From Thalia democratica (lineage: Eukaryota), in the NCBI GenBank assembly GCA_965202585.1, contig OZ241831.1, forward strand, positions 14,756,001 through 14,820,000: a stretch of DNA of 64,000 nt, in the 5' to 3' direction. Both the position numbers and the translations under genes were made by a program. A model generated the notes under the pieces. The model was not told the origin of the DNA. It made no database searches and worked only from the letters and a program-made list of their open reading frames with translations. Position 1 is the first letter of the stretch, and each line of letters begins with the position of its first letter. Below, one piece after another: positions 5,033 to 57,200 of the stretch.

Positions 5033-5156
5033 GCCTACGACCATACCACACTGAACACACCCCATCTCGTCCGATCTGGGAAGTTAAAAAAGTGTCGGGC
5101 TTAAAGGTTAGTACTTAGATGGGTGACCGCTTGGGAATACCGCGTGCCGTAGGCTT
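5033..5156 (+). rRNA. 5S rRNA: 5S rRNA gene, atypical variant (4 nt longer than canonical; functionality uncertain)
   Basis: GCCTACGACCATACC...CTCGTCCGATCT...GGTTAGTACTTAGATGGGTGACCGC...GGGAATACC...GTAGGCTT aligns with metazoan 5S over its full length. Confidence 0.88.
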
Positions 5157-5409: not shown

Positions 5410-8160
5410 TCAAGTTGTCTCATACACAGTCTTCAATAAAGTTACAAAGCTGTTTACTTCTTTTCCTTTGCATAATGTTTCAGCTATTGGTTTTTTTACG
5501 CGTTGATGTTTTATGTTAAAAATCCATAAGCAACTAAGTTTAATAAAACAAGTCTAAGATTTGTAAAAAAAAAATTCAACTTTGCTATTCATGACAGTTG
5601 TACTGAAATTGAATGCTTTTTGGTCGTTTTTTTTCTTTAGAACAATCACTGTTGTTTACATTTATTTATTTTTGAAAATACATTTTGATAAGCATGATCA
5701 GTATAATTTTCATGAATAAACCTCTACTGTTCAAGTATTTTTTAAAATAATACGAAATTTATTAAAACTAACTGTTTTATTTTCATTCCATAATGAAATT
5801 ACTTTTTATAGTGACGTAGAACAAGTTTTAAAAATAAAGTTTAGTATTTATTAAATTAAAAAAAAAGTCTACGAAGTAAGCATAATTGAGAATTTTTTTT
5901 TTGTCTAAATAAAGAAGTTAACAAGAAAAAGCCTTTGGACAACACGTTTAAGTTAGTTGAAGCTTTTTATGAAACATCAAATTACAACTAGTTAACAAAA
6001 CTTATTCCACGATTTAGGCAATACTTTCAAAACATAACTAGCTCTCTTATTAAAAGTTGCTTAGAATGTCCAGTAAAAGTACAAAGGCAATAGTAAGTAT
6101 GCATATCTAGGTGACAAAAGAAAAGACAGAAAAAATATTATTTAGAAGTAAAATGTGTCATTCAACTAGCTCTAACTCTTACTTTTGATCTTTTACCACC
6201 ACAAAGTTGGTTGAGTTGCACATTTTTGTTGTTTAGTTAAAGCTTGTTTAACACTGCTTAGTAGACTTTAAAGCTGGTTAAATAAGCTGGTTGTCCTGAT
6301 TACATTAGATTAACTTGATAAAGCTATAAGCAATGCTAGATCAACTAAAAGATGTAAGCTTTTTAAAGTTATAGATTCGAAATGTTCTTTTTCGTTCATG
6401 TTGTGATGCATATATGTTGTTTTTTGTTTATGTATTTATGAGTTGTAATGCATGTTTTAAATGTGTTTTAGTTAAAGTTATTTTCTGAAACGATACAACA
6501 TAAATTAGACCCAAAGCTAAACTAATTTTCAACTTGATAAATCTGTGAACAATTTGAGTTCAATAAAAAGCTTTGTAAAAAGAATTCGGTTGTAATACAT
6601 GATGGTTGTTGTACTGAAATTGCAGTTTTGTTGATTTTTTTATTTTGGTTTGAACAGCTTCTGTTGTTAATTGTATTTTAAACTGTTTTACTTAGTTTGA
6701 GTTGCATTGTAATAAAAAGAAATAATAAATTTTAGAAACTACTGGTTTATTAGATTGTAATTGTTAATATCCAAAGTTAAGTTTGTTTTATTATAATTTA
6801 ATGTATTATTTTCATTTAAAATCTAATACTTTTTACAGTGACGTAGAACAGTATTTTTTAAATAAACTAAATACTTTTTCAATTTTACAAAAAGAAGTAT
6901 ACAAAATAAGCATAACGGGAATAAGTTTTGTTTAAAGAAAGAAGTTTACAAGAAAATCTTATGGACACAAAAATCAAGTTAGTTGAAGCTTTCTGCGAAA
7001 CGTATATTTATTTGTAATGTAACAGACTTAAGCAATGGTTTTTAAATACAACTAGCTCCCTCCTCAAAAGTAGTTTAAAATGTCATGTAAGAGAACAAAA
7101 ACAATTGTAAATACAAGTATGTGACAAAAAGTTAAAACACAAAAGTATAAGTTAGAAGTAAACTGTTTTATACAAACATTCTAACTCACCTTTTACCAGC
7201 ACAAAAAACATTAAGTTTGGTTCGTTTTTGTCGTCTAGTTAGAGCTTGTTTAATGCTGCTTAGTGGACATTGATATCTGGTTGAATCAGTTGGTGGTCCT
7301 TATCACTTTAGACTTATAACAGAAATGACTATAGACTGTAAAAGTCGTTTTAAGTCATCAAGTTGTCTCACATATAGTTGTAACAAGTAATACAAATGAG
7401 TGGTGACAAGCTGTTACTTCTTTTCCTTTCAGCTTAAAAATTGAGTTCTTTCATGTATTCGACTAATTAAGCAATCAAAAACAAACTAAATAGATGTCAG
7501 CTTTGTAAAATAAAAGTTTTAATGATAAGCTTTCATCAACTATTTCAGCTATTTTTGTTTTGGTAAATCGCGTACTTGTTTATAGTGTTGTTTTTCTTTG
7601 AACAATCGATGTTGTTTACATTTATGTATTTTAATGTATGATTTTTAAATTACTATGCATGTTTTTAATCGTGTTTTAGTTGTAATTAAACTATATTTTT
7701 TGTGAAACAAATATTGTTTGTTGTTAACAATTGAAAACATACTTTGTTGATAAACCAAAGTAAGTTTTATTCTTATTACTATTTAAGTGTACTATTTTCA
7801 TTGAAAAATATAAATAGTTTTTAAAGTGACGTAGCGTAACTTTTTTTAATAAGTTAAAAAACAAATAATTATTGAATGTTTAAGAAAAGTGCACAAAGTA
7901 AGAACGAATAAGATAGAGTTCTTAGAAAAAAAAAGATATCAAGAAGAAAAAGACATCCAAGTTAGTTAATTATGTTAAGCATTCAATTACAGTAGTTGTT
8001 ACATCAAGTTGTCTAACACCTAGTCTAAACAAGTAACTTTACCATGAAAATAATAAAACAAGCATTTTTTAACCGTGTTTAAGCTAATGAGTTGGTTTGT
8101 ATCATAGGGTGATGTTTTGGCTTGAAATGATATCTTAAATAAGCTAAATAGATGTCAGCC
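5410..8160. repeat. Diverged ~1-kb internal triplication in the spacer (copies at about 5410-6370, 6370-7350 and 7358-8160; all units)
   Basis: Collinear shared blocks: AGTGACGTAG at 5810/6837/7825; GTTGTACTGAAATTG at 5597/6608; AAGTTAGTT at about 5948/6977/7960; GCTTGTTTAA..CTGCTTAGT at about 6242/7244; TCAAGTTGTCTCA at 5410/7358. Boundaries approximate. Confidence 0.8.
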
Positions 8161-8757: not shown

Positions 8758-9117
8758 TTATTTTGAGCTGGTGTACTTGGTAACAGCTTTAGTTCCCTCT
8801 GAAACTGCGTGCTTTGACAACTCGCCGGGGAGCAAGAGCCTGACAGCAGTTTGAATTTCGCGGCTGCTCACAGTTGACCTCTTGTTGTAATGAGCCAAAC
8901 GTGAAGCCTCTGCTGCAATGCGCTCGAAGATGTCGTTGACAAATGAGTTCATGATTCCCATCGCCTTGCTGGAAATTCCGGTGTCGGGGTGCACTTGCTT
9001 CAAAACTTTGTACACGTAGATGCCAAAGCTTTCTTTGTGCCTCCTCCTTCGCTTCTTCTTGCCGTCGACCGGGGTGGTCTTGGCTACTGACTTCTTCGCG
9101 CCTTTGGTTGCGGTCAT
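8758..9117 (-). CDS. H2B: Histone H2B (unit 2)
   Basis: Protein identical to unit 1. Confidence 0.98.
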
Positions 9118-9276
9118 GATGATGTGTGAACTTCAGTCTCGGCGCCAGCTTATATACTGAAAGTTTATGCAAATTAGCATTTCCGTACGCGAACGACAGC
9201 CTCTCTCATTTTATGATTCTCTCGTTTGTCGTAAATATTTTTAGGTGGTCCTGAAAAGGACCTGGTTTGTTTTAAC

Positions 9277-9657
9277 TTAGGCTGATTTTTTTGAAGCGGT
9301 CTTCTTGGGCAATAATACTGCCTGGATGTTTGGAAGAACACCTCCTTGAGCAATAGTGACGCCGCCGAGAAGTTTGTTCAACTCTTCGTCGTTGCGGATA
9401 GCTAGTTGCAAATGGCGGGGAATGATCCTGCTTTTCTTGTTGTCACGAGCAGCGTTACCGGCAAGCTCGAGCACTTCTGCGCTCAAATACTCGAGAACGG
9501 CAGCCAGATAAACTGGAGCACCAGCTCCGACTCTTTGGCTGTAGTTGCCAGTGCGCAACAGGCGGTGCACGCGACCGACTGGAAACTGCAGTCCTGCACG
9601 AGAAGACCTGCTCTTCGGCTTAGATTTGAGTTTTGATCCTTTACCACGTCCCGACAT
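9277..9657 (-). CDS. H2A: Histone H2A (unit 2)
   Basis: Protein identical to unit 1; start trimmed to MSGRGK. Confidence 0.98.
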
Positions 9658-9851
9658 CTTGTTGTTCGAATGATTGTGCCAAGATGCTCGCACAGCTCTG
9701 TATAAAACTCAAACCTAACCGCGTCGAACGAACAACTAATTTGCATATGTCGTAGCTGCTCTTTAATCTTGTCAAAATGTTTGTTCAGCAGTGTTGAAGA
9801 AATTTGATTTTGAAATGGGTGGTCCTAAAAAGGACCGAGTTTGCTAAATGT

Positions 9852-10196
<345 letters not shown>

Positions 10197-10352
10197 TTAT
10201 TTATAAGCTGTTACGGACGCGTACGGTTACTACTAAACTAATTTGCATACTCAGAAAAGTCTCTAACTTACATTCTTTCGTTTGGTTTATTTTTTCTCAC
10301 TATCAAACAAAGTTTAAAAGTGGCCCTGAAAAGGACCGGTTTTAGCTAATGC

Positions 10353-10889
<537 letters not shown>

Positions 10890-10950
10890 TCATGTTTTGT
10901 TAATATTTTGATTGAGTGGTCCTGAAAAGGACCTTGGGTAAAAGAACAAC

Positions 10951-11538
10951 TTATTTTTTACAGCTCTTCTTGGTACTTGCCTTCTTAGATGCTTTTTTGG
11001 CTACCGGCTTCTTCTTGGTTACTTTCTTCTTCTTGCTTGCAGCTTTTTTAGATGCTGCTTTCTTAGGAGCACACTTTTTAGCAGGTCGCTTTTTGGCTGC
11101 TGGTTTTTTCGCTGCCTTCTTGGGAGCACACTTCTTTACTCGTTTCTTTGCTGCGGCCTTCTTTACTGCTGGCTTTTTAGCTACTTTTTTTGTCCTCTTC
11201 TTGGGACCAGCAGCTGGCATTGGAGCAAGCTTGAACGAGCCGGAAGCGCCTTTTCCAGTAGTCTGGAGAAAAGAACCTTTGGTCACGCCGCTGGTAAGTG
11301 CTCTCTTCAAGTGAGAATTAGAAGCTGAGAGGTCAAGCTTGTAGGTGTCCGCGATATATTTTTGTATCTTCTGGCGGGATGTACCTTTTCGTTCCTTCAT
11401 TGCTCCCAGGGCAGAGCTAATCATCTCCCTGTAAGTCGGGTGTTCTGCCTTCTTGGCGCTTGGTCTCTTGGAAGACCTGGCCTTGGCTGCGGCCGCCGCC
11501 GCTGCTACTGCTGGTGCTGCTACTGCTGTGGTAGACAT
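10951..11538 (-). CDS. H1: Histone H1 (unit 2)
   Basis: Protein identical to unit 1. Confidence 0.95.
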   Translation of the reverse strand: MSTTAVAAPAVAAAAAAAKARSSKRPSAKKAEHPTYREMISSALGAMKERKGTSRQKIQKYIADTYKLDLSASNSHLKRALTSGVTKGSFLQTTGKGASGSFKLAPMPAAGPKKRTKKVAKKPAVKKAAAKKRVKKCAPKKAAKKPAAKKRPAKKCAPKKAASKKAASKKKKVTKKKPVAKKASKKASTKKSCKK

Positions 11539-13224: not shown

Positions 13225-13348
13225 GCCTACGACCATACCACACTGAACACACCCCATCTCGTCCGATCTGGGAAGTTAAAAAAGTGTCGGGCTTAAAGGT
13301 TAGTACTTAGATGGGTGACCGCTTGGGAATACCGCGTGCCGTAGGCTT
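13225..13348 (+). rRNA. 5S rRNA: 5S rRNA variant (unit 2)
   Basis: Same sequence as unit 1. Confidence 0.88.
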
Positions 13349-16300
13349 TTATTTTCAAGCACTTATTTGTTGGATTTATTCTTCATACTTATTATGAAAG
13401 TTTCTAGTTTATCTTAAACATTTTTCAATAATAAATGACACACTAACTAGACTGTCATTTAGTTGTAGACTTATTTTGTCTGTTGCTTTCATTTTGCTAT
13501 TTATATAAAAGCCATAACTTTATTTCTTAAAAGCGTTTCGTTCTGCTCTAGACTTTTAACAAATATAACTTGAAATAAACAGTTGCAGTAGTTTTTAGTT
13601 ATCAAGTTGTCTCATACACAGTCTTCAATAAAGTTACAAAGCTGTTTACTTCTTTTCCTTTGCATAATGTTTCAGCTATTGGTTTTTTTACGCGTTGATG
13701 TTTTATGTTAAAAATCCATAAGCAACTAAGTTTAATAAAACAAGTCTAAGATTTGTAAAAAAAAAATTCAACTTTGCTATTCATGACAGTTGTACTGAAA
13801 TTGAATGCTTTTTGGTCGTTTTTTTTCTTTAGAACAATCACTGTTGTTTACATTTATTTATTTTTGAAAATACATTTTGATAAGCATGATCAGTATAATT
13901 TTCATGAATAAACCTCTACTGTTCAAGTATTTTTTAAAATAATACGAAATTTATTAAAACTAACTGTTTTATTTTCATTCCATAATGAAATTACTTTTTA
14001 TAGTGACGTAGAACAAGTTTTAAAAATAAAGTTTAGTATTTATTAAATTAAAAAAAAAGTCTACGAAGTAAGCATAATTGAGAATTTTTTTTTTGTCTAA
14101 ATAAAGAAGTTAACAAGAAAAAGCCTTTGGACAACACGTTTAAGTTAGTTGAAGCTTTTTATGAAACATCAAATTACAACTAGTTAACAAAACTTATTCC
14201 ACGATTTAGGCAATACTTTCAAAACATAACTAGCTCTCTTATTAAAAGTTGCTTAGAATGTCCAGTAAAAGTACAAAGGCAATAGTAAGTATGCATATCT
14301 AGGTGACAAAAGAAAAGACAGAAAAAATATTATTTAGAAGTAAAATGTGTCATTCAACTAGCTCTAACTCTTACTTTTGATCTTTTACCACCACAAAGTT
14401 GGTTGAGTTGCACATTTTTGTTGTTTAGTTAAAGCTTGTTTAACACTGCTTAGTAGACTTTAAAGCTGGTTAAATAAGCTGGTTGTCCTGATTACATTAG
14501 ATTAACTTGATAAAGCTATAAGCAATGCTAGATCAACTAAAAGATGTAAGCTTTTTAAAGTTATAGATTCGAAATGTTCTTTTTCGTTCATGTTGTGATG
14601 CATATATGTTGTTTTTTGTTTATGTATTTATGAGTTGTAATGCATGTTTTAAATGTGTTTTAGTTAAAGTTATTTTCTGAAACGATACAACATAAATTAG
14701 ACCCAAAGCTAAACTAATTTTCAACTTGATAAATCTGTGAACAATTTGAGTTCAATAAAAAGCTTTGTAAAAAGAATTCGGTTGTAATACATGATGGTTG
14801 TTGTACTGAAATTGCAGTTTTGTTGATTTTTTTATTTTGGTTTGAACAGCTTCTGTTGTTAATTGTATTTTAAACTGTTTTACTTAGTTTGAGTTGCATT
14901 GTAATAAAAAGAAATAATAAATTTTAGAAACTACTGGTTTATTAGATTGTAATTGTTAATATCCAAAGTTAAGTTTGTTTTATTATAATTTAATGTATTA
15001 TTTTCATTTAAAATCTAATACTTTTTACAGTGACGTAGAACAGTATTTTTTAAATAAACTAAATACTTTTTCAATTTTACAAAAAGAAGTATACAAAATA
15101 AGCATAACGGGAATAAGTTTTGTTTAAAGAAAGAAGTTTACAAGAAAATCTTATGGACACAAAAATCAAGTTAGTTGAAGCTTTCTGCGAAACGTATATT
15201 TATTTGTAATGTAACAGACTTAAGCAATGGTTTTTAAATACAACTAGCTCCCTCCTCAAAAGTAGTTTAAAATGTCATGTAAGAGAACAAAAACAATTGT
15301 AAATACAAGTATGTGACAAAAAGTTAAAACACAAAAGTATAAGTTAGAAGTAAACTGTTTTATACAAACATTCTAACTCACCTTTTACCAGCACAAAAAA
15401 CATTAAGTTTGGTTCGTTTTTGTCGTCTAGTTAGAGCTTGTTTAATGCTGCTTAGTGGACATTGATATCTGGTTGAATCAGTTGGTGGTCCTTATCACTT
15501 TAGACTTATAACAGAAATGACTATAGACTGTAAAAGTCGTTTTAAGTCATCAAGTTGTCTCACATATAGTTGTAACAAGTAATACAAATGAGTGGTGACA
15601 AGCTGTTACTTCTTTTCCTTTCAGCTTAAAAATTGAGTTCTTTCATGTATTCGACTAATTAAGCAATCAAAAACAAACTAAATAGATGTCAGCTTTGTAA
15701 AATAAAAGTTTTAATGATAAGCTTTCATCAACTATTTCAGCTATTTTTGTTTTGGTAAATCGCGTACTTGTTTATAGTGTTGTTTTTCTTTGAACAATCG
15801 ATGTTGTTTACATTTATGTATTTTAATGTATGATTTTTAAATTACTATGCATGTTTTTAATCGTGTTTAGTTGTAATTAAACTATATTTTTTGTGAAACA
15901 AATATTGTTTGTTGTTAACAATTGAAAACATACTTTGTTGATAAACCAAAGTAAGTTTTATTCTTATTACTATTTAAGTGTACTATTTTCATTGAAAAAT
16001 ATAAATAGTTTTTAAAGTGACGTAGCGTAACTTTTTTTAATAAGTTAAAAAACAAATAATTATTGAATGTTTAAGAAAAGTGCACAAAGTAAGAACGAAT
16101 AAGATAGAGTTCTTAGAAAAAAAAAGATATCAAGAAGAAAAAGACATCCAAGTTAGTTAATTATGTTAAGCATTCAATTACAGTAGTTGTTACATCAAGT
16201 TGTCTAACACCTAGTCTAAACAAGTAACTTTACCATGAAAATAATAAAACAAGCATTTTTTAACCGTGTTTAAGCTAATGAGTTGGTTTGTATCATAGGG

Positions 16301-21539: not shown

Positions 21540-24500
21540 TTATTTTCAAGCACTTATTTGTTGGATTTATTCTTCATACTTATTATGAAAGTTTCTAGTT
21601 TATCTTAAACATTTTTCAATAATAAATGACACACTAACTAGACTGTCATTTAGTTGTAGACTTATTTTGTCTGTTGCTTTCATTTTGCTATTTATATAAA
21701 AGCCATAACTTTATTTCTTAAAAGCGTTTCGTTCTGCTCTAGACTTTTAACAAATATAACTTGAAATAAACAGTTGCAGTAGTTTTTAGTTATCAAGTTG
21801 TCTCATACACAGTCTTCAATAAAGTTACAAAGCTGTTTACTTCTTTTCCTTTGCATAATGTTTCAGCTATTGGTTTTTTTACGCGTTGATGTTTTATGTT
21901 AAAAATCCATAAGCAACTAAGTTTAATAAAACAAGTCTAAGATTTGTAAAAAAAAAATTCAACTTTGCTATTCATGACAGTTGTACTGAAATTGAATGCT
22001 TTTTGGTCGTTTTTTTTCTTTAGAACAATCACTGTTGTTTACATTTATTTATTTTTGAAAATACATTTTGATAAGCATGATCAGTATAATTTTCATGAAT
22101 AAACCTCTACTGTTCAAGTATTTTTTAAAATAATACGAAATTTATTAAAACTAACTGTTTTATTTTCATTCCATAATGAAATTACTTTTTATAGTGACGT
22201 AGAACAAGTTTTAAAAATAAAGTTTAGTATTTATTAAATTAAAAAAAAAGTCTACGAAGTAAGCATAATTGAGAATTTTTTTTTTGTCTAAATAAAGAAG
22301 TTAACAAGAAAAAGCCTTTGGACAACACGTTTAAGTTAGTTGAAGCTTTTTATGAAACATCAAATTACAACTAGTTAACAAAACTTATTCCACGATTTAG
22401 GCAATACTTTCAAAACATAACTAGCTCTCTTATTAAAAGTTGCTTAGAATGTCCAGTAAAAGTACAAAGGCAATAGTAAGTATGCATATCTAGGTGACAA
22501 AAGAAAAGACAGAAAAAATATTATTTAGAAGTAAAATGTGTCATTCAACTAGCTCTAACTCTTACTTTTGATCTTTTACCACCACAAAGTTGGTTGAGTT
22601 GCACATTTTTGTTGTTTAGTTAAAGCTTGTTTAACACTGCTTAGTAGACTTTAAAGCTGGTTAAATAAGCTGGTTGTCCTGATTACATTAGATTAACTTG
22701 ATAAAGCTATAAGCAATGCTAGATCAACTAAAAGATGTAAGCTTTTTAAAGTTATAGATTCGAAATGTTCTTTTTCGTTCATGTTGTGATGCATATATGT
22801 TGTTTTTTGTTTATGTATTTATGAGTTGTAATGCATGTTTTAAATGTGTTTTAGTTAAAGTTATTTTCTGAAACGATACAACATAAATTAGACCCAAAGC
22901 TAAACTAATTTTCAACTTGATAAATCTGTGAACAATTTGAGTTCAATAAAAAGCTTTGTAAAAAGAATTCGGTTGTAATACATGATGGTTGTTGTACTGA
23001 AATTGCAGTTTTGTTGATTTTTTTATTTTGGTTTGAACAGCTTCTGTTGTTAATTGTATTTTAAACTGTTTTACTTAGTTTGAGTTGCATTGTAATAAAA
23101 AGAAATAATAAATTTTAGAAACTACTGGTTTATTAGATTGTAATTGTTAATATCCAAAGTTAAGTTTGTTTTATTATAATTTAATGTATTATTTTCATTT
23201 AAAATCTAATACTTTTTACAGTGACGTAGAACAGTATTTTTTAAATAAACTAAATACTTTTTCAATTTTACAAAAAGAAGTATACAAAATAAGCATAACG
23301 GGAATAAGTTTTGTTTAAAGAAAGAAGTTTACAAGAAAATCTTATGGACACAAAAATCAAGTTAGTTGAAGCTTTCTGCGAAACGTATATTTATTTGTAA
23401 TGTAACAGACTTAAGCAATGGTTTTTAAATACAACTAGCTCCCTCCTCAAAAGTAGTTTAAAATGTCATGTAAGAGAACAAAAACAATTGTAAATACAAG
23501 TATGTGACAAAAAGTTAAAACACAAAAGTATAAGTTAGAAGTAAACTGTTTTATACAAACATTCTAACTCACCTTTTACCAGCACAAAAAACATTAAGTT
23601 TGGTTCGTTTTTGTCGTCTAGTTAGAGCTTGTTTAATGCTGCTTAGTGGACATTGATATCTGGTTGAATCAGTTGGTGGTCCTTATCACTTTAGACTTAT
23701 AACAGAAATGACTATAGACTGTAAAAGTCGTTTTAAGTCATCAAGTTGTCTCACATATAGTTGTAACAAGTAATACAAATGAGTGGTGACAAGCTGTTAC
23801 TTCTTTTCCTTTCAGCTTAAAAATTGAGTTCTTTCATGTATTCGACTAATTAAGCAATCAAAAACAAACTAAATAGATGTCAGCTTTGTAAAATAAAAGT
23901 TTTAATGATAAGCTTTCATCAACTATTTCAGCTATTTTTGTTTTGGTAAATCGCGTACTTGTTTATAGTGTTGTTTTTCTTTGAACAATCGATGTTGTTT
24001 ACATTTATGTATTTTAATGTATGATTTTTAAATTACTATGCATGTTTTTAATCGTGTTTTAGTTGTAATTAAACTATATTTTTTGTGAAACAAATATTGT
24101 TTGTTGTTAACAATTGAAAACATACTTTGTTGATAAACCAAAGTAAGTTTTATTCTTATTACTATTTAAGTGTACTATTTTCATTGAAAAATATAAATAG
24201 TTTTTAAAGTGACGTAGCGTAACTTTTTTTAATAAGTTAAAAAACAAATAATTATTGAATGTTTAAGAAAAGTGCACAAAGTAAGAACGAATAAGATAGA
24301 GTTCTTAGAAAAAAAAAGATATCAAGAAGAAAAAGACATCCAAGTTAGTTAATTATGTTAAGCATTCAATTACAGTAGTTGTTACATCAAGTTGTCTAAC
24401 ACCTAGTCTAAACAAGTAACTTTACCATGAAAATAATAAAACAAGCATTTTTTAACCGTGTTTAAGCTAATGAGTTGGTTTGTATCATAGGGTGATGTTT

Positions 24501-29731: not shown

Positions 29732-32700
29732 TTATTTTCAAGCACTTATTTGTTGGATTTATTGTTCATACTTATTATGAAAGTTTCTAGTTTATCTTAA
29801 ACATTTTTCAATAATAAATGACACACTAACTAGACTGTCATTTAGTTGTAGACTTATTTTGTCTGTTGCTTTCATTTTGCTATTTATATAAAAGCCATAA
29901 CTTTATTTCTTAAAAGCGTTTCGTTCTGCTCTAGACTTTTAACAAATATAACTTGAAATAAACAGTTGCAGTAGTTTTTAGTTATCAAGTTGTCTCATAC
30001 ACAGTCTTCAATAAAGTTACAAAGCTGTTTACTTCTTTTCCTTTGCATAATGTTTCAGCTATTGGTTTTTTTACGCGTTGATGTTTTATGTTAAAAATCC
30101 ATAAGCAACTAAGTTTAATAAAACAAGTCTAAGATTTGTAAAAAAAAAATTCAACTTTGCTATTCATGACAGTTGTACTGAAATTGAATGCTTTTTGGTC
30201 GTTTTTTTTCTTTAGAACAATCACTGTTGTTTACATTTATTTATTTTTGAAAATACATTTTGATAAGCATGATCAGTATAATTTTCATGAATAAACCTCT
30301 ACTGTTCAAGTATTTTTTAAAATAATACGAAATTTATTAAAACTAACTGTTTTATTTTCATTCCATAATGAAATTACTTTTTATAGTGACGTAGAACAAG
30401 TTTTAAAAATAAAGTTTAGTATTTATTAAATTAAAAAAAAAGTCTACGAAGTAAGCATAATTGAGAATTTTTTTTTTGTCTAAATAAAGAAGTTAACAAG
30501 AAAAAGCCTTTGGACAACACGTTTAAGTTAGTTGAAGCTTTTTATGAAACATCAAATTACAACTAGTTAACAAAACTTATTCCACGATTTAGGCAATACT
30601 TTCAAAACATAACTAGCTCTCTTATTAAAAGTTGCTTAGAATGTCCAGTAAAAGTACAAAGGCAATAGTAAGTATGCATATCTAGGTGACAAAAGAAAAG
30701 ACAGAAAAAATATTATTTAGAAGTAAAATGTGTCATTCAACTAGCTCTAACTCTTACTTTTGATCTTTTACCACCACAAAGTTGGTTGAGTTGCACATTT
30801 TTGTTGTTTAGTTAAAGCTTGTTTAACACTGCTTAGTAGACTTTAAAGCTGGTTAAATAAGCTGGTTGTCCTGATTACATTAGATTAACTTGATAAAGCT
30901 ATAAGCAATGCTAGATCAACTAAAAGATGTAAGCTTTTTAAAGTTATAGATTCGAAATGTTCTTTTTCGTTCATGTTGTGATGCATATATGTTGTTTTTT
31001 GTTTATGTATTTATGAGTTGTAATGCATGTTTTAAATGTGTTTTAGTTAAAGTTATTTTCTGAAACGATACAACATAAATTAGACCCAAAGCTAAACTAA
31101 TTTTCAACTTGATAAATCTGTGAACAATTTGAGTTCAATAAAAAGCTTTGTAAAAAGAATTCGGTTGTAATACATGATGGTTGTTGTACTGAAATTGCAG
31201 TTTTGTTGATTTTTTTATTTTGGTTTGAACAGCTTCTGTTGTTAATTGTATTTTAAACTGTTTTACTTAGTTTGAGTTGCATTGTAATAAAAAGAAATAA
31301 TAAATTTTAGAAACTACTGGTTTATTAGATTGTAATTGTTAATATCCAAAGTTAAGTTTGTTTTATTATAATTTAATGTATTATTTTCATTTAAAATCTA
31401 ATACTTTTTACAGTGACGTAGAACAGTATTTTTTAAATAAACTAAATACTTTTTCAATTTTACAAAAAGAAGTATACAAAATAAGCATAACGGGAATAAG
31501 TTTTGTTTAAAGAAAGAAGTTTACAAGAAAATCTTATGGACACAAAAATCAAGTTAGTTGAAGCTTTCTGCGAAACGTATATTTATTTGTAATGTAACAG
31601 ACTTAAGCAATGGTTTTTAAATACAACTAGCTCCCTCCTCAAAAGTAGTTTAAAATGTCATGTAAGAGAACAAAAACAATTGTAAATACAAGTATGTGAC
31701 AAAAAGTTAAAACACAAAAGTATAAGTTAGAAGTAAACTGTTTTATACAAACATTCTAACTCACCTTTTACCAGCACAAAAAACATTAAGTTTGGTTCGT
31801 TTTTGTCGTCTAGTTAGAGCTTGTTTAATGCTGCTTAGTGGACATTGATATCTGGTTGAATCAGTTGGTGGTCCTTATCACTTTAGACTTATAACAGAAA
31901 TGACTATAGACTGTAAAAGTCGTTTTAAGTCATCAAGTTGTCTCACATATAGTTGTAACAAGTAATACAAATGAGTGGTGACAAGCTGTTACTTCTTTTC
32001 CTTTCAGCTTAAAAATTGAGTTCTTTCATGTATTCGACTAATTAAGCAATCAAAAACAAACTAAATAGATGTCAGCTTTGTAAAATAAAAGTTTTAATGA
32101 TAAGCTTTCATCAACTATTTCAGCTATTTTTGTTTTGGTAAATCGCGTACTTGTTTATAGTGTTGTTTTTCTTTGAACAATCGATGTTGTTTACATTTAT
32201 GTATTTTAATGTATGATTTTTAAATTACTATGCATGTTTTTAATTTTAGTTGTAATTAAACTATATTTTTTGTGAAACAAATATTGTTTGTTGTTAACAA
32301 TTGAAAACATACTTTGTTGATAAACCAAAGTAAGTTTTATTCTTATTACTATTTAAGTGTACTATTTTCATTGAAAAATATAAATAGTTTTTAAAGTGAC
32401 GTAGCGTAACTTTTTTTAATAAGTTAAAAAACAAATAATTATTGAATGTTTAAGAAAAGTGCACAAAGTAAGAACGAATAAGATAGAGTTCTTAGAAAAA
32501 AAAAGATATCAAGAAGAAAAAGACATCCAAGTTAGTTAATTATGTTAAGCATTCAATTACAGTAGTTGTTACATCAAGTTGTCTAACACCTAGTCTAAAC
32601 AAGTAACTTTACCATGAAAATAATAAAACAAGCATTTTTTAACCGTGTTTAAGCTAATGAGTTGGTTTGTATCATAGGGTGATGTTTTGGCTTGAAATGA

Positions 32701-37918: not shown

Positions 37919-40900
37919 TTATTTTCAAGCACTTATTTGTTGGATTTATTCTTCATACTTATTATGAAAGTTTCTAGTTTATCTTAAACATTTTTCAATA
38001 ATAAATGACACACTAACTAGACTGTCATTTAGTTGTAGACTTATTTTGTCTGTTGCTTTCATTTTGCTATTTATATAAAAGCCATAACTTTATTTCTTAA
38101 AAGCGTTTCGTTCTGCTCTAGACTTTTAACAAATATAACTTGAAATAAACAGTTGCAGTAGTTTTTAGTTATCAAGTTGTCTCATACACAGTCTTCAATA
38201 AAGTTACAAAGCTGTTTACTTCTTTTCCTTTGCATAATGTTTCAGCTATTGGTTTTTTTACGCGTTGATGTTTTATGTTAAAAATCCATAAGCAACTAAG
38301 TTTAATAAAACAAGTCTAAGATTTGTAAAAAAAAAATTCAACTTTGCTATTCATGACAGTTGTACTGAAATTGAATGCTTTTTGGTAGTTTTTTTTCTTT
38401 AGAACAATCACTGTTGTTTACATTTATTTATTTTTGAAAATACATTTTGATAAGCATGATCAGTATAATTTTCATGAATAAACCTCTACTGTTCAAGTAT
38501 TTTTTAAAATAATACGAAATTTATTAAAACTAACTGTTTTATTTTCATTCCATAATGAAATTACTTTTTATAGTGACGTAGAACAAGTTTTAAAAATAAA
38601 GTTTAGTATTTATTAAATTAAAAAAAAAGTCTACGAAGTAAGCATAATTGAGAATTTTTTTTTTGTCTAAATAAAGAAGTTAACAAGAAAAAGCCTTTGG
38701 ACAACACGTTTAAGTTAGTTGAAGCTTTTTATGAAACATCAAATTACAACTAGTTAACAAAACTTATTCCACGATTTAGGCAATACTTTCAAAACATAAC
38801 TAGCTCTCTTATTAAAAGTTGCTTAGAATGTCCAGTAAAAGTACAAAGGCAATAGTAAGTATGCATATCTAGGTGACAAAAGAAAAGACAGAAAAAATAT
38901 TATTTAGAAGTAAAATGTGTCATTCAACTAGCTCTAACTCTTACTTTTGATCTTTTACCACCACAAAGTTGGTTGAGTTGCACATTTTTGTTGTTTAGTT
39001 AAAGCTTGTTTAACACTGCTTAGTAGACTTTAAAGCTGGTTAAATAAGCTGGTTGTCCTGATTACATTAGATTAACTTGATAAAGCTATAAGCAATGCTA
39101 GATCAACTAAAAGATGTAAGCTTTTTAAAGTTATAGATTCGAAATGTTCTTTTTCGTTCATGTTGTGATGCATATATGTTGTTTTTTGTTTATGTATTTA
39201 TGAGTTGTAATGCATGTTTTAAATGTGTTTTAGTTAAAGTTATTTTCTGAAACGATACAACATAAATTAGACCCAAAGCTAAACTAATTTTCAACTTGAT
39301 AAATCTGTGAACAATTTGAGTTCAATAAAAAGCTTTGTAAAAAGAATTCGGTTGTAATACATGATGGTTGTTGTACTGAAATTGCAGTTTTGTTGATTTT
39401 TTTATTTTGGTTTGAACAGCTTCTGTTGTTAATTGTATTTTAAACTGTTTTACTTAGTTTGAGTTGCATTGTAATAAAAAGAAATAATAAATTTTAGAAA
39501 CTACTGGTTTATTAGATTGTAATTGTTAATATCCAAAGTTAAGTTTGTTTTATTATAATTTAATGTATTATTTTCATTTAAAATCTAATACTTTTTACAG
39601 TGACGTAGAACAGTATTTTTTAAATAAACTAAATACTTTTTCAATTTTACAAAAAGAAGTATACAAAATAAGCATAACGGGAATAAGTTTTGTTTAAAGA
39701 AAGAAGTTTACAAGAAAATCTTATGGACACAAAAATCAAGTTAGTTGAAGCTTTCTGCGAAACGTATATTTATTTGTAATGTAAAAGACTTAAGCAATGG
39801 TTTTTAAATACAACTAGCTCCCTCCTCAAAAGTAGTTTAAAATGTCATGTAAGAGAACAAAAACAATTGTAAATACAAGTATGTGACAAAAAGTTAAAAC
39901 ACAAAAGTATAAGTTAGAAGTAAACTGTTTTATACAAACATTCTAACTCACCTTTTACCAGCACAAAAAACATTAAGTTTGGTTCGTTTTTGTCGTCTAG
40001 TTAGAGCTTGTTTAATGCTGCTTAGTGGACATTGATATCTGGTTGAATCAGTTGGTGGTCCTTATCACTTTAGACTTATAACAGAAATGACTATAGACTG
40101 TAAAAGTCGTTTTAAGTCATCAAGTTGTCTCACATATAGTTGTAACAAGTAATACAAATGAGTGGTGACAAGCTGTTACTTCTTTTCCTTTCAGCTTAAA
40201 AATTGAGTTCTTTCATGTATTCGACTAATTAAGCAATCAAAAACAAACTAAATAGATGTCAGCTTTGTAAAATAAAAGTTTTAATGATAAGCTTTCATCA
40301 ACTATTTCAGCTATTTTTGTTTTGGTAAATCGCGTACTTGTTTATAGTGTTGTTTTTCTTTGAACAATCGATGTTGTTTACATTTATGTATTTTAATGTA
40401 TGATTTTTAAATTACTATGCATGTTTTTAATCGTGTTAGTTGTAATTAAACTATATTTTTTGTGAAACAAATATTGTTTGTTGTTAACAATTGAAAACAT
40501 ACTTTGTTGATAAACCAAAGTAAGTTTTATTCTTATTACTATTTAAGTGTACTATTTTCATTGAAAAATATAAATAGTTTTTAAAGTGACGTAGCGTAAC
40601 TTTTTTTAATAAGTTAAAAAACAAATAATTATTGAATGTTTAAGAAAAGTGCACAAAGTAAGAACGAATAAGATAGAGTTCTTAGAAAAAAAAAGATATC
40701 AAGAAGAAAAAGACATCCAAGTTAGTTAATTATGTTAAGCATTCAATTACAGTAGTTGTTACATCAAGTTGTCTAACACCTAGTCTAAACAAGTAACTTT
40801 ACCATGAAAATAATAAAACAAGCATTTTTTAACCGTGTTTAAGCTAATGAGTTGGTTTGTATCATAGGGTGATGTTTTGGCTTGAAATGATATCTTAAAT

Positions 40901-46107: not shown

Positions 46108-49100
46108 TTATTTTCAAGCACTTATTTGTTGGATTTATTCTTCATACTTATTATGAAAGTTTCTAGTTTATCTTAAACATTTTTTAATAATAAATGACAC
46201 ACTAACTAGACTGTCATTTAGTTGTAGACTTATTTTGTCTGTTGCTTTCATTTTGCTATTTATATAAAAGCCATAACTTTATTTCTTAAAAGCGTTTCGT
46301 TCTGCTCTAGACTTTTAACAAATATAACTTGAAATAAACAGTTGCAGTAGTTTTTAGTTATCAAGTTGTCTCATACACAGTCTTCAATAAAGTTACAAAG
46401 CTGTTTACTTCTTTTCCTTTGCATAATGTTTCAGCTATTGGTTTTTTTACGCGTTGATGTTTTATGTTAAAAATCCATAAGCAACTAAGTTTAATAAAAC
46501 AAGTCTAAGATTTGTAAAAAAAAAATTCAACTTTGCTATTCATGACAGTTGTACTGAAATTGAATGCTTTTTGGTCGTTTTTTTTCTTTAGAACAATCAC
46601 TGTTGTTTACATTTATTTATTTTTGAAAATACATTTTGATAAGCATGATCAGTATAATTTTCATGAATAAACCTCTACTGTTCAAGTATTTTTTAAAATA
46701 ATACGAAATTTATTAAAACTAACTGTTTTATTTTCATTCCATAATGAAATTACTTTTTATAGTGACGTAGAACAAGTTTTAAAAATAAAGTTTAGTATTT
46801 ATTAAATTAAAAAAAAAGTCTACGAAGTAAGCATAATTGAGAATTTTTTTTTTGTCTAAATAAAGAAGTTAACAAGAAAAAGCCTTTGGACAACACGTTT
46901 AAGTTAGTTGAAGCTTTTTATGAAACATCAAATTACAACTAGTTAACAAAACTTATTCCACGATTTAGGCAATACTTTCAAAACATAACTAGCTCTCTTA
47001 TTAAAAGTTGCTTAGAATGTCCAGTAAAAGTACAAAGGCAATAGTAAGTATGCATATCTAGGTGACAAAAGAAAAGACAGAAAAAATATTATTTAGAAGT
47101 AAAATGTGTCATTCAACTAGCTCTAACTCTTACTTTTGATCTTTTACCACCACAAAGTTGGTTGAGTTGCACATTTTTGTTGTTTAGTTAAAGCTTGTTT
47201 AACACTGCTTAGTAGACTTTAAAGCTGGTTAAATAAGCTGGTTGTCCTGATTACATTAGATTAACTTGATAAAGCTATAAGCAATGCTAGATCAACTAAA
47301 AGATGTAAGCTTTTTAAAGTTATAGATTCGAAATGTTCTTTTTCGTTCATGTTGTGATGCATATATGTTGTTTTTTGTTTATGTATTTATGAGTTGTAAT
47401 GCATGTTTTAAATGTGTTTTAGTTAAAGTTATTTTCTGAAACGATACAACATAAATTAGACCCAAAGCTAAACTAATTTTCAACTTGATAAATCTGTGAA
47501 CAATTTGAGTTCAATAAAAAGCTTTGTAAAAAGAATTCGGTTGTAATACATGATGGTTGTTGTACTGAAATTGCAGTTTTGTTGATTTTTTTATTTTGGT
47601 TTGAACAGCTTCTGTTGTTAATTGTATTTTAAACTGTTTTACTTAGTTTGAGTTGCATTGTAATAAAAAGAAATAATAAATTTTAGAAACTACTGGTTTA
47701 TTAGATTGTAATTGTTAATATCCAAAGTTAAGTTTGTTTTATTATAATTTAATGTATTATTTTCATTTAAAATCTAATACTTTTTACAGTGACGTAGAAC
47801 AGTATTTTTTAAATAAACTAAATACTTTTTCAATTTTACAAAAAGAAGTATACAAAATAAGCATAACGGGAATAAGTTTTGTTTAAAGAAAGAAGTTTAC
47901 AAGAAAATCTTATGGACACAAAAATCAAGTTAGTTGAAGCTTTCTGCGAAACGTATATTTATTTGTAATGTAACAGACTTAAGCAATGGTTTTTAAATAC
48001 AACTAGCTCCCTCCTCAAAAGTAGTTTAAAATGTCATGTAAGAGAACAAAAACAATTGTAAATACAAGTATGTGACAAAAAGTTAAAACACAAAAGTATA
48101 AGTTAGAAGTAAACTGTTTTATACAAACATTCTAACTCACCTTTTACCAGCACAAAAAACATTAAGTTTGGTTCGTTTTTGTCGTCTAGTTAGAGCTTGT
48201 TTAATGCTGCTTAGTGGACATTGATATCTGGTTGAATCAGTTGGTGGTCCTTATCACTTTAGACTTATAACAGAAATGACTATAGACTGTAAAAGTCGTT
48301 TTAAGTCATCAAGTTGTCTCACATATAGTTGTAACAAGTAATACAAATGAGTGGTGACAAGCTGTTACTTCTTTTCCTTTCAGCTTAAAAATTGAGTTCT
48401 TTCATGTATTCGACTAATTAAGCAATCAAAAACAAACTAAATAGATGTCAGCTTTGTAAAATAAAAGTTTTAATGATAAGCTTTCATCAACTATTTCAGC
48501 TATTTTTGTTTTGGTAAATCGCGTACTTGTTTATAGTGTTGTTTTTCTTTGAACAATCGATGTTGTTTACATTTATGTATTTTAATGTATGATTTTTAAA
48601 TTACTATGCATGTTTTTAATTTTAGTTGTAATTAAACTATATTTTTTGTGAAACAAATATTGTTTGTTGTTAACAATTGAAAACATACTTTGTTGATAAA
48701 CCAAAGTAAGTTTTATTCTTATTACTATTTAAGTGTACTATTTTCATTGAAAAATATAAATAGTTTTTAAAGTGACGTAGCGTAACTTTTTTTAATAAGT
48801 TAAAAAACAAATAATTATTGAATGTTTAAGAAAAGTGCACAAAGTAAGAACGAATAAGATAGAGTTCTTAGAAAAAAAAAGATATCAAGAAGAAAAAGAC
48901 ATCCAAGTTAGTTAATTATGTTAAGCATTCAATTACAGTAGTTGTTACATCAAGTTGTCTAACACCTAGTCTAAACAAGTAACTTTACCATGAAAATAAT
49001 AAAACAAGCATTTTTTAACCGTGTTTAAGCTAATGAGTTGGTTTGTATCATAGGGTGATGTTTTGGCTTGAAATGATATCTTAAATAAGCTAAATAGATG

Positions 49101-54294: not shown

Positions 54295-57200
54295 TTATTT
54301 TCAAGCACTTATTTGTTGGATTTATTCTTCATACTTATTATGAAAGTTTCTAGTTTATCTTAAACATTTTTCAATAATAAATGACACACTAACTAGACTG
54401 TCATTTAGTTGTAGACTTATTTTGTCTGTTGCTTTCATTTTGCTATTTATATAAAAGCCATAACTTTATTTCTTAAAAGCGTTTCGTTCTGCTCTAGACT
54501 TTTAACAAATATAACTTGAAATAAACAGTTGCAGTAGTTTTTAGTTATCAAGTTGTCTCATACACAGTCTTCAATAAAGTTACAAAGCTGTTTACTTCTT
54601 TTCCTTTGCATAATGTTTCAGCTATTGGTTTTTTTACGCGTTGATGTTTTATGTTAAAAATCCATAAGCAACTAAGTTTAATAAAACAAGTCTAAGATTT
54701 GTAAAAAAAAAATTCAACTTTGCTATTCATGACAGTTGTACTGAAATTGAATGCTTTTTGGTCGTTTTTTTTCTTTAGAACAATCACTGTTGTTTACATT
54801 TATTTATTTTTGAAAATACATTTTGATAAGCATGATCAGTATAATTTTCATGAATAAACCTCTACTGTTCAAGTATTTTTTAAAATAATACGAAATTTAT
54901 TAAAACTAACTGTTTTATTTTCATTCCATAATGAAATTACTTTTTATAGTGACGTAGAACAAGTTTTAAAAATAAAGTTTAGTATTTATTAAATTAAAAA
55001 AAAAGTCTACGAAGTAAGCATAATTGAGAATTTTTTTTTTGTCTAAATAAAGAAGTTAACAAGAAAAAGCCTTTGGACAACACGTTTAAGTTAGTTGAAG
55101 CTTTTTATGAAACATCAAATTACAACTAGTTAACAAAACTTATTCCACGATTTAGGCAATACTTTCAAAACATAACTAGCTCTCTTATTAAAAGTTGCTT
55201 AGAATGTCCAGTAAAAGTACAAAGGCAATAGTAAGTATGCATATCTAGGTGACAAAAGAAAAGACAGAAAAAATATTATTTAGAAGTAAAATGTGTCATT
55301 CAACTAGCTCTAACTCTTACTTTTGATCTTTTACCACCACAAAGTTGGTTGAGTTGCACATTTTTGTTGTTTAGTTAAAGCTTGTTTAACACTGCTTAGT
55401 AGACTTTAAAGCTGGTTAAATAAGCTGGTTGTCCTGATTACATTAGATTAACTTGATAAAGCTATAAGCAATGCTAGATCAACTAAAAGATGTAAGCTTT
55501 TTAAAGTTATAGATTCGAAATGTTCTTTTTCGTTCATGTTGTGATGCATATATGTTGTTTTTTGTTTATGTATTTATGAGTTGTAATGCATGTTTTAAAT
55601 GTGTTTTAGTTAAAGTTATTTTCTGAAACGATACAACATAAATTAGACCCAAAGCTAAACTAATTTTCAACTTGATAAATCTGTGAACAATTTGAGTTCA
55701 ATAAAAAGCTTTGTAAAAAGAATTCGGTTGTAATACATGATGGTTGTTGTACTGAAATTGCAGTTTTGTTGATTTTTTTATTTTGGTTTGAACAGCTTCT
55801 GTTGTTAATTGTATTTTAAACTGTTTTACTTAGTTTGAGTTGCATTGTAATAAAAAGAAATAATAAATTTTAGAAACTACTGGTTTATTAGATTGTAATT
55901 GTTAATATCCAAAGTTAAGTTTGTTTTATTATAATTTAATGTATTATTTTCATTTAAAATCTAATACTTTTTACAGTGACGTAGAACAGTATTTTTTAAA
56001 TAAACTAAATACTTTTTCAATTTTACAAAAAGAAGTATACAAAATAAGCATAACGGGAATAAGTTTTGTTTAAAGAAAGAAGTTTACAAGAAAATCTTAT
56101 GGACACAAAAATCAAGTTAGTTGAAGCTTTCTGCGAAACGTATATTTATTTGTAATGTAACAGACTTAAGCAATGGTTTTTAAATACAACTAGCTCCCTC
56201 CTCAAAAGTAGTTTAAAATGTCATGTAAGAGAACAAAAACAATTGTAAATACAAGTATGTGACAAAAAGTTAAAACACAAAAGTATAAGTTAGAAGTAAA
56301 CTGTTTTATACAAACATTCTAACTCACCTTTTACCAGCACAAAAAACATTAAGTTTGGTTCGTTTTTGTCGTCTAGTTAGAGCTTGTTTAATGCTGCTTA
56401 GTGGACATTGATATCTGGTTGAATCAGTTGGTGGTCCTTATCACTTTAGACTTATAACAGAAATGACTATAGACTGTAAAAGTCGTTTTAAGTCATCAAG
56501 TTGTCTCACATATAGTTGTAACAAGTAATACAAATGAGTGGTGACAAGCTGTTACTTCTTTTCCTTTCAGCTTAAAAATTGAGTTCTTTCATGTATTCGA
56601 CTAATTAAGCAATCAAAAACAAACTAAATAGATGTCAGCTTTGTAAAATAAAAGTTTTAATGATAAGCTTTCATCAACTATTTCAGCTATTTTTGTTTTG
56701 GTAAATCGCGTACTTGTTTATAGTGTTGTTTTTCTTTGAACAATCGATGTTGTTTACATTTATGTATTTTAATGTATGATTTTTAAATTACTATGCATGT
56801 TTTTAATCGTGTTAGTTGTAATTAAACTATATTTTTTGTGAAACAAATATTGTTTGTTGTTAACAATTGAAAACATACTTTGTTGATAAACCAAAGTAAG
56901 TTTTATTCTTATTACTATTTAAGTGTACTATTTTCATTGAAAAATATAAATAGTTTTTAAAGTGACGTAGCGTAACTTTTTTTAATAAGTTAAAAAACAA
57001 ATAATTATTGAATGTTTAAGAAAAGTGCACAAAGTAAGAACGAATAAGATAGAGTTCTTAGAAAAAAAAAGATATCAAGAAGAAAAAGACATCCAAGTTA
57101 GTTAATTATGTTAAGCATTCAATTACAGTAGTTGTTACATCAAGTTGTCTAACACCTAGTCTAAACAAGTAACTTTACCATGAAAATAATAAAACAAGCA

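Follow-up and report, generated by a model that had tools for sequence, protein, structure and literature searches.

Why should eight bases in the spacer of a tandemly repeated gene unit have changed several times over, when the units of the same array are otherwise nearly identical? The question is raised by an array of histone and 5S ribosomal RNA (rRNA) genes in a marine animal, of which a window of 64,000 nucleotides (C7:14756001-14820000 of the 801-Mb assembly) was analyzed. In the window, units of 8187–8192 bp follow one another head to tail. Each of these units contains the genes for histones H1, H3, H4, H2A and H2B and one 5S copy, as judged by open reading frames (ORFs) and Rfam matches. 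The full array, for which 260 kb were read, comprises 29 units and thus 29 copies of the site (C7:14670416-14905930); units are numbered 1 to 7 within the window in Table 1 and along the whole array elsewhere. The site, hereafter the hot site, lies in AT-rich spacer between the 5S and histone genes, which are convergently oriented: following histone transcription it is ~1.0 kb past the 3′ end of H2B, and it is 2.5 kb downstream of the 5S copy. The allele counts and statistics given below describe the assembly, in which the hot site has six alleles. The explanation that we favor, with a probability that we put at about even, is a genuine local hotspot of nicking or breakage followed by misrepair, the alleles having then been spread by exchange within the array.

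The hot site is ancestral in 21 of the 29 units, whereas a T>C substitution occurs in one unit, a 1-bp deletion in one, a 2-bp deletion in two, a 5-bp deletion in three and a compound 4-bp deletion in one. All changes fall into a mutable core of eight bases that reads CGTGTTTT in the ancestral state and CGTGTCTT in the T>C allele. CGTGTTTT is the ancestral allele, because it is carried by all the diverged outer units and by the main contigs of four sequencing runs, each from a different study (one run each for organisms A and B and two of marine metagenomes); read support was examined through Logan contigs only. The compound allele, AATTGTTAG, corresponds to the −2 allele with an additional loss of CG, and no single deletion from the ancestral sequence yields it. 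This makes at least five mutational events at the eight-base site, namely T>C, −1, −2, −5 and the second hit that led to the compound allele; most of them are deletions of one to five bases.

The sequence-only reading of the window had listed seven sites with the alleles 0, −1, 0, −5, −2, −5 and −2, their AAT starts running from 7667 to 56805, and each was recovered exactly there. The survey of the whole array added two alleles, T>C and the compound one, to those of the window's seven units. The same reading took the alleles for nested deletions left by break repair, which is borne out in part. All the deletions can be drawn across one point, CGTG/TTTT, with 0–1 nt of microhomology, and the T that follows CGTG can be counted among the lost bases in each of the four deletion alleles; on the other hand, a substitution and a 1-bp loss are also present at the site. 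A common breakpoint with little microhomology, as found here, is what end-joining scars display. It is compatible with the break model but not specific to it.

The site turned out to be exceptional within the unit. An alignment of the six complete units of the window has 13 variable columns, of which six belong to the hot site, six are single-nucleotide polymorphisms (SNPs) and one is an A10>A9 change. The unit lengths of 8192, 8191, 8192, 8187, 8189 and 8187 bp are wholly accounted for by the hot site and this single A-run change, in agreement with what had been claimed from the sequence. The core of the array (units 8–18) consists of 11 near-identical units that differ pairwise at only 1–16 positions per 8.19 kb. 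Among the 19 variable loci of the core units, 18 are biallelic and the hot site has six alleles; no other locus exceeds three alleles in any unit family. At least 5 of 23 events in the core units fall within 8 of 8192 bp, which gives an upper-bound P of ~1.5e-7 and a per-base excess of ~280-fold. The same test applied to the window's seven units alone gives P ~3e-4. The clustering is far from what chance would give, and the site is a real statistical mutation hotspot in the assembly. Of the eight derived copies, seven are located in the 11 core units; the remaining 18 units hold only one (Fisher P = 0.0014), three units further on.

Each unit offers a control of its own. The identical 9-mer, GTGTTTTAG, occurs again in the neighboring ~1-kb sub-repeat. 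The statement that this paralogue is invariant in the window holds and can be widened, since it is unchanged in 26 of 26 array copies. A second control is provided by the sister arrays (C10, C7:31.36 Mb, C167 and C342), whose spacer is ~77% identical and whose orthologous site reads CAGTTGTAGTTTAATTG in 71 of 71 copies; this rules out hypervariability inherent to the position in all histone arrays. The instability is therefore restricted to one array and to one sequence variant, and the unstable version alone contains a CpG (TCGTG vs. the stable ATGTG and TTGTA). Furthermore, 29 consecutive intervals in the sister arrays are exactly 7275 bp long.

Homopolymers provide a further comparison. There are ~240 of them per unit with a length of at least 4 nt, almost none of which is variable in the core, and the 139 other T runs of at least 4 nt are stable. 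The 10 homopolymers of at least 8 nt per unit show one change (A10>A9) over the 11 core units. Since homopolymers are nearly invariant, general slippage or polishing noise is disfavored. Slippage is expected to bring instability that rises with run length and changes by whole repeat units, whereas here a T4 context has undergone at least five events. The view that simple homopolymer slippage does not explain the site therefore stands, the long runs being almost invariant and the site an outlier. A general instability of CpG, GTGT or T runs is ruled out by stable counterparts elsewhere in the unit. Conversion by a paralogue was also considered as the source of the alleles and rejected: sub-repeat B (AAATGTGTTTTAG) and the sister type (CAGTTGTAGTTTAATTG) do not contain the −5, −2 or compound sequences. 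A T3 donor may have given rise to the −1 allele by conversion. Scars of Cas9-type editing were discarded as well, as inspection of the sequence revealed no suitably spaced NGG on either strand.

The backgrounds on which the alleles occur tell something about their history. Two of the three −5 copies have the core haplotype, and the third, at C7:14845733, has one of outer type, with marker differences 130 bp to the left and 140 bp to the right of the site. Among the core units, −5 and −2 each occur both with and without the derived marker 9273C, which units 13, 16 and 17 have in common; this constitutes a four-gamete conflict. It follows from these two observations that −5 and −2 either arose more than once or were moved by conversion tracts under about 270 bp. 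Blocks are indeed exchanged between units of the array, unit 18 being a hybrid, part core type and part unit-19 type. None of the haplotype-block junctions between unit families is located at the hot site. Run X17 (organism A) shows the core haplotype, which has A at 7466 and an extra A (A10) at 7926. This haplotype does not appear in the contigs of X19 (organism B), X1 and X2 (marine metagenomes), which have only outer-type alleles at 7466 and 7926. For this reason, the core looks like a recent amplification in which the site has changed repeatedly in a short time. The core family may be private to organism A, to one population or to one individual.

Could the site be the target of a mobile element, as R2 retroelements have in ribosomal DNA (rDNA)? 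The sequence-only reading had proposed this. Across the 801-Mb assembly, 29 left-flank 23-mers and 29 right-flank 24-mers were found, all of them paired within 30 bp. Therefore, no unit carries an insertion, and an R2-like or other site-specific element target is unsupported and was rejected. There is neither an inserted element nor an orphan half-site among the assembled units. No gene for a reverse transcriptase, endonuclease or transposase was found in the unit, the genome beyond the unit not having been searched for such elements; the unit's ORFs of at least 70 aa outside the histone frames are short ORFs that overlap the histone genes in another frame or on the other strand. The suggestion that the site serves a site-specific nuclease, programmed recombination or homogenization of the array finds nothing to back it, and the block junctions lie elsewhere. 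A separate observation concerns C1:7584256-7584278, where an exact 20-nt copy of the left flank (ACTATGCATGTTTTTAAT...) stops where the hot site begins, with nothing similar beyond. This match is probably due to chance in AT-rich DNA.

Read-derived contigs were examined for the alleles. The contig over positions 7597–7846 is ancestral without gaps in all four runs, and no deletion at the site is among the indels listed. The X17 contigs also do not show the A9 allele at 7926, even though A9 is found in about half of the units as assembled. Logan contigs therefore drop minor indel alleles and are uninformative as regards the derived alleles of the hot site. At 7466 the A:G ratio is ~65:35 in X17 vs. 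38:62 in the assembled units; either the assembly may give the core a wrong size, or X17 may come from a different individual. A scan of metagenome contigs found no independent wild copies of the site. In X19 (organism B), one contig with a depth of ~2533, as compared to ~1460 for the array, matches up to 7666, immediately before the hot site, and again from 7844. The 177 bases in between are skipped, a junction that does not occur in this assembly. The contig may represent another array type, or else a variant unit whose breakpoint coincides with the site.

Apart from the hot site, the unit has the composition of a tandem histone-5S repeat, with five replication-dependent histone genes that possess 3′ stem-loops, a 5S copy and head-to-tail repetition (Table 1). 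A histone 3′ stem-loop match is present at each of the five genes, with scores just under the Rfam gathering score. The remainder of the unit is spacer with 23–31% G+C, made of decayed sub-repeats of ~1 kb.

Table 1. Features of the histone-5S array, with positions counted from the first nucleotide of the window.
Feature	Positions	Strand	Sequence, basis or remark
Hot site, unit 1	7667..7679	+	ancestral, AATCGTGTTTTAG
Hot site, unit 2	15859..15870	+	−1 allele, AATCGTGTTTAG (T4 to T3)
Hot site, unit 3	24050..24062	+	ancestral
Hot site, unit 4	32242..32249	+	−5 allele, AATTTTAG; CGTGT lost, 1-nt T microhomology
Hot site, unit 5	40429..40439	+	−2 allele, AATCGTGTTAG (T4 to T2)
Hot site, unit 6	48618..48625	+	−5 allele; carries 9273C, unlike unit 4
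Hot site, unit 7	56805..56815	+	−2 allele; carries 9273C, unlike unit 5
Hot-site flanks			left ATGCATGTTTTTAAT, right TAGTTGTAATTAAAC
Paralogous GTGTTTTAG, neighboring ~1-kb sub-repeat	6463..6471	+	preceded by AAAT, not AATC; no CpG; stable control
Block upstream of the hot site	7588..7632	+	35–80 bp upstream; common to sister arrays and sub-repeat A (5628-5672)
5S rRNA copy	5033..5155 (next 13225-13347)	+	Rfam RF00001, 84.1 bits
Histone gene block, one unit	8758..11538	−	ORFs and histone 3′ stem-loop matches
H2B	8758-9117	−	ORF
H2A	9277-9657	−	ORF
H4	9852-10163	−	ORF
H3	10353-10763	−	ORF
H1	10951-11538	−	ORF

In the H3 gene of unit 18 (C7:14823670-14824152, just outside the window), the 2 bp CT are duplicated close to the 3′ end. 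The gene is frameshifted and its C-terminus altered in an otherwise near-identical unit, which is also the carrier of the compound allele. In the block upstream of the hot site, the core CTTTGAACAATCGATGTTGTTTACATTTATGT (about 7596-7626, ~31 nt) is nearly identical in the sister arrays, as compared to ~77% for the surrounding spacer, and the block may be a functional spacer element. The sister array at C10:25634108-26055906 is organized in blocks of opposite orientation, with plus-strand copies to ~25.845 Mb, minus-strand copies at 25.860–26.017 Mb and a return to plus-strand copies at 26.019 Mb. Where the orientation changes for the last time, a minus- and a plus-strand copy of the site are only 2.6 kb apart, so that the array has large inverted segments. 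The part of the query that holds the 5S copy found no match in the sister units.

According to the favored explanation, one or both strands would be repeatedly nicked or broken at or beside the G/T junction, and the break or nick would be resealed imprecisely, either by end-joining or by a topoisomerase 1 (TOP1) sequential-cleavage deletion. The unequal exchange and short gene conversion that homogenize the array would carry and shuffle the resulting alleles, and the position between convergent transcription units would favor topoisomerase activity. As far as the allele sequences can tell, a TOP1-type nick would fit −2 and −5 equally well as a double-strand break. We infer that the animal's DNA does carry these alleles, and the assembly speaks for this in that it keeps SNPs of single units elsewhere in the same core. 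Several observations weigh against the explanation. Logan contigs show only the ancestral allele at the site, and the derived alleles are known from the assembly alone. The same alleles occur on different backgrounds and mostly in the part of the array that is hardest to assemble, which is also the pattern of a systematic read or consensus error. The −1 and T>C alleles and the CG loss of the compound allele fall outside the TOP1 motif discussed below. No sequence feature accounts for the instability of the site, given that the 217 other CpGs and 24 other GTGT of each unit are stable, and a hairpin or cruciform is ruled out, since the fold is no better than that of shuffled sequences (z = 0.37).

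An artefact of sequencing or assembly is doubtful, yet it has to be taken seriously. It would imply that read errors or a mistaken consensus in the near-identical core created the variants, the animal's DNA being only, or almost only, ancestral. The derived copies crowd into the 11 units that are most alike and in which reads are hardest to place with certainty, as it predicts, and the recurrence of −5 and −2 without linkage to other markers, together with the exclusively ancestral contigs of the four runs, points the same way. The core-to-outer ratio in X17 is also unlike that of the assembly (G at 7466 in ~35% of reads vs. 62% of units), so the core may be mis-sized. However, the consensus is otherwise very accurate, to judge by the one change in 10 long homopolymers over 11 units and by the equal length of the 29 sister intervals, and single-unit SNPs were resolved in the same core. 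Long reads do not usually err by dropping 5 bp where the sequence is non-repetitive. One −5 copy, at 14845733, resides in a diverged unit where reads can be placed unambiguously, and the contig evidence is uninformative, as the 7926 allele was dropped by Logan contigs too. Replication misalignment without any break, by contrast, would take the alleles as real and ascribe them to slippage in the short T run and in GTGT/T plus one or two unrelated events, conversion or crossover having spread them. We consider this unlikely. It is true that −1 and −2 are simple changes in T-run length, that the near-direct repeats TGTTTTTA and TGTTTTA flank the CG, and that the array exchanges blocks, as in the hybrid unit 18. 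Nevertheless, T4 is a poor substrate for slippage, the other T runs of at least 4 nt and the 10 runs of at least 8 nt are stable, and so is the GTGTTTTAG paralogue. In addition, the −5, compound and T>C alleles are not repeat-unit changes, and misalignment of the near-repeats predicts a loss of ~11–12 bp, which was not seen.

Two further possibilities invoke a dedicated cut. In the first, the site would be a programmed or enzyme-preferred break point that started the unequal exchange by which the core was amplified, the six alleles being occasional end-joined misrepairs; this we regard as quite improbable. In the second, a dedicated endonuclease (R2-like, homing-type, of a site-specific DNA transposon, or of the host) would cut the site and leave end-joining or excision scars, and the cut might have initiated the amplification. 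The deletions that overlap one point with reproducible outcomes would suit such an enzyme, as would the confinement of derived alleles to the recently amplified unit family and its neighbor and the apparent privacy of that family to organism A (X19, X1 and X2 being of outer type only). Even so, we hold this for very improbable: the assembly contains no insertion or orphan half-site, the extra left-flank match on C1 extends over only ~20 nt, no candidate nuclease gene is present in the unit, a substitution and a 1-bp loss occur at the site as well, and the block junctions between unit families are not there.

If the alleles are real, the locus offers a natural local excess of small indels, ~280-fold, at a defined 8-bp sequence. 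It also comes with built-in controls, namely the identical 9-mer paralogue and the 71 unchanged orthologous copies, and therefore the cause of a germline indel hotspot would be directly testable. In addition, the multi-allelic site would serve as a natural barcode for unit genealogy, unequal exchange and conversion in a histone array. Should the break-point reading be true, the site would be the histone-array counterpart of the copy-number control of rDNA, which is driven by a replication-fork barrier and breaks. If, on the contrary, the alleles are an artefact, the lesson is that even an otherwise excellent assembly can hold site-specific false variants in the near-identical core of an array.

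Among known systems, concerted evolution of tandem histone repeats, with or without 5S, has been described for bivalves, crustaceans and other invertebrates. The present array resembles them in its five histone genes with stem-loops and 5S, its near-identical units, its unit families and hybrids, and in variants spread by unequal exchange. Concerted evolution accounts for the copying and moving of alleles but not for six alleles at 8 bp vs. ~18 biallelic variants over 8.2 kb. The scars that end-joining leaves at recurrently cut sites, such as nuclease targets and the targets of R2 and other site-specific elements in rDNA, share with the hot site small deletions that overlap one point with 0–1 nt of microhomology, a compound allele and the setting in a multicopy tandem array. 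They differ in that no element, half-site or nuclease gene was found here and that the 71 sister-array orthologues are untouched.

The deletions attributed to TOP1 (ID-TOP1, COSMIC ID4) are 2–5 bp long and occur at short repeats or microhomology with the motif TN(d-1)T, the deleted bases being directly preceded by a T on the 5′ side (Reijns et al. 2022; PMC8866115). The hot site departs from this signature in its −1, T>C and CG-loss changes, which lie outside the rule, and in its focus, as ID-TOP1 is genome-wide and diffuse and not a single 8-bp hotspot. The deletions at the site are small and located at a T-rich short repeat or single-nucleotide microhomology, and both −2 (TT in TTTT) and −5 (CGTGT after a T) satisfy the TN(d-1)T rule. 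Furthermore, the hot site lies downstream of genes that are presumably heavily transcribed, in a convergent zone where TOP1 would be expected.

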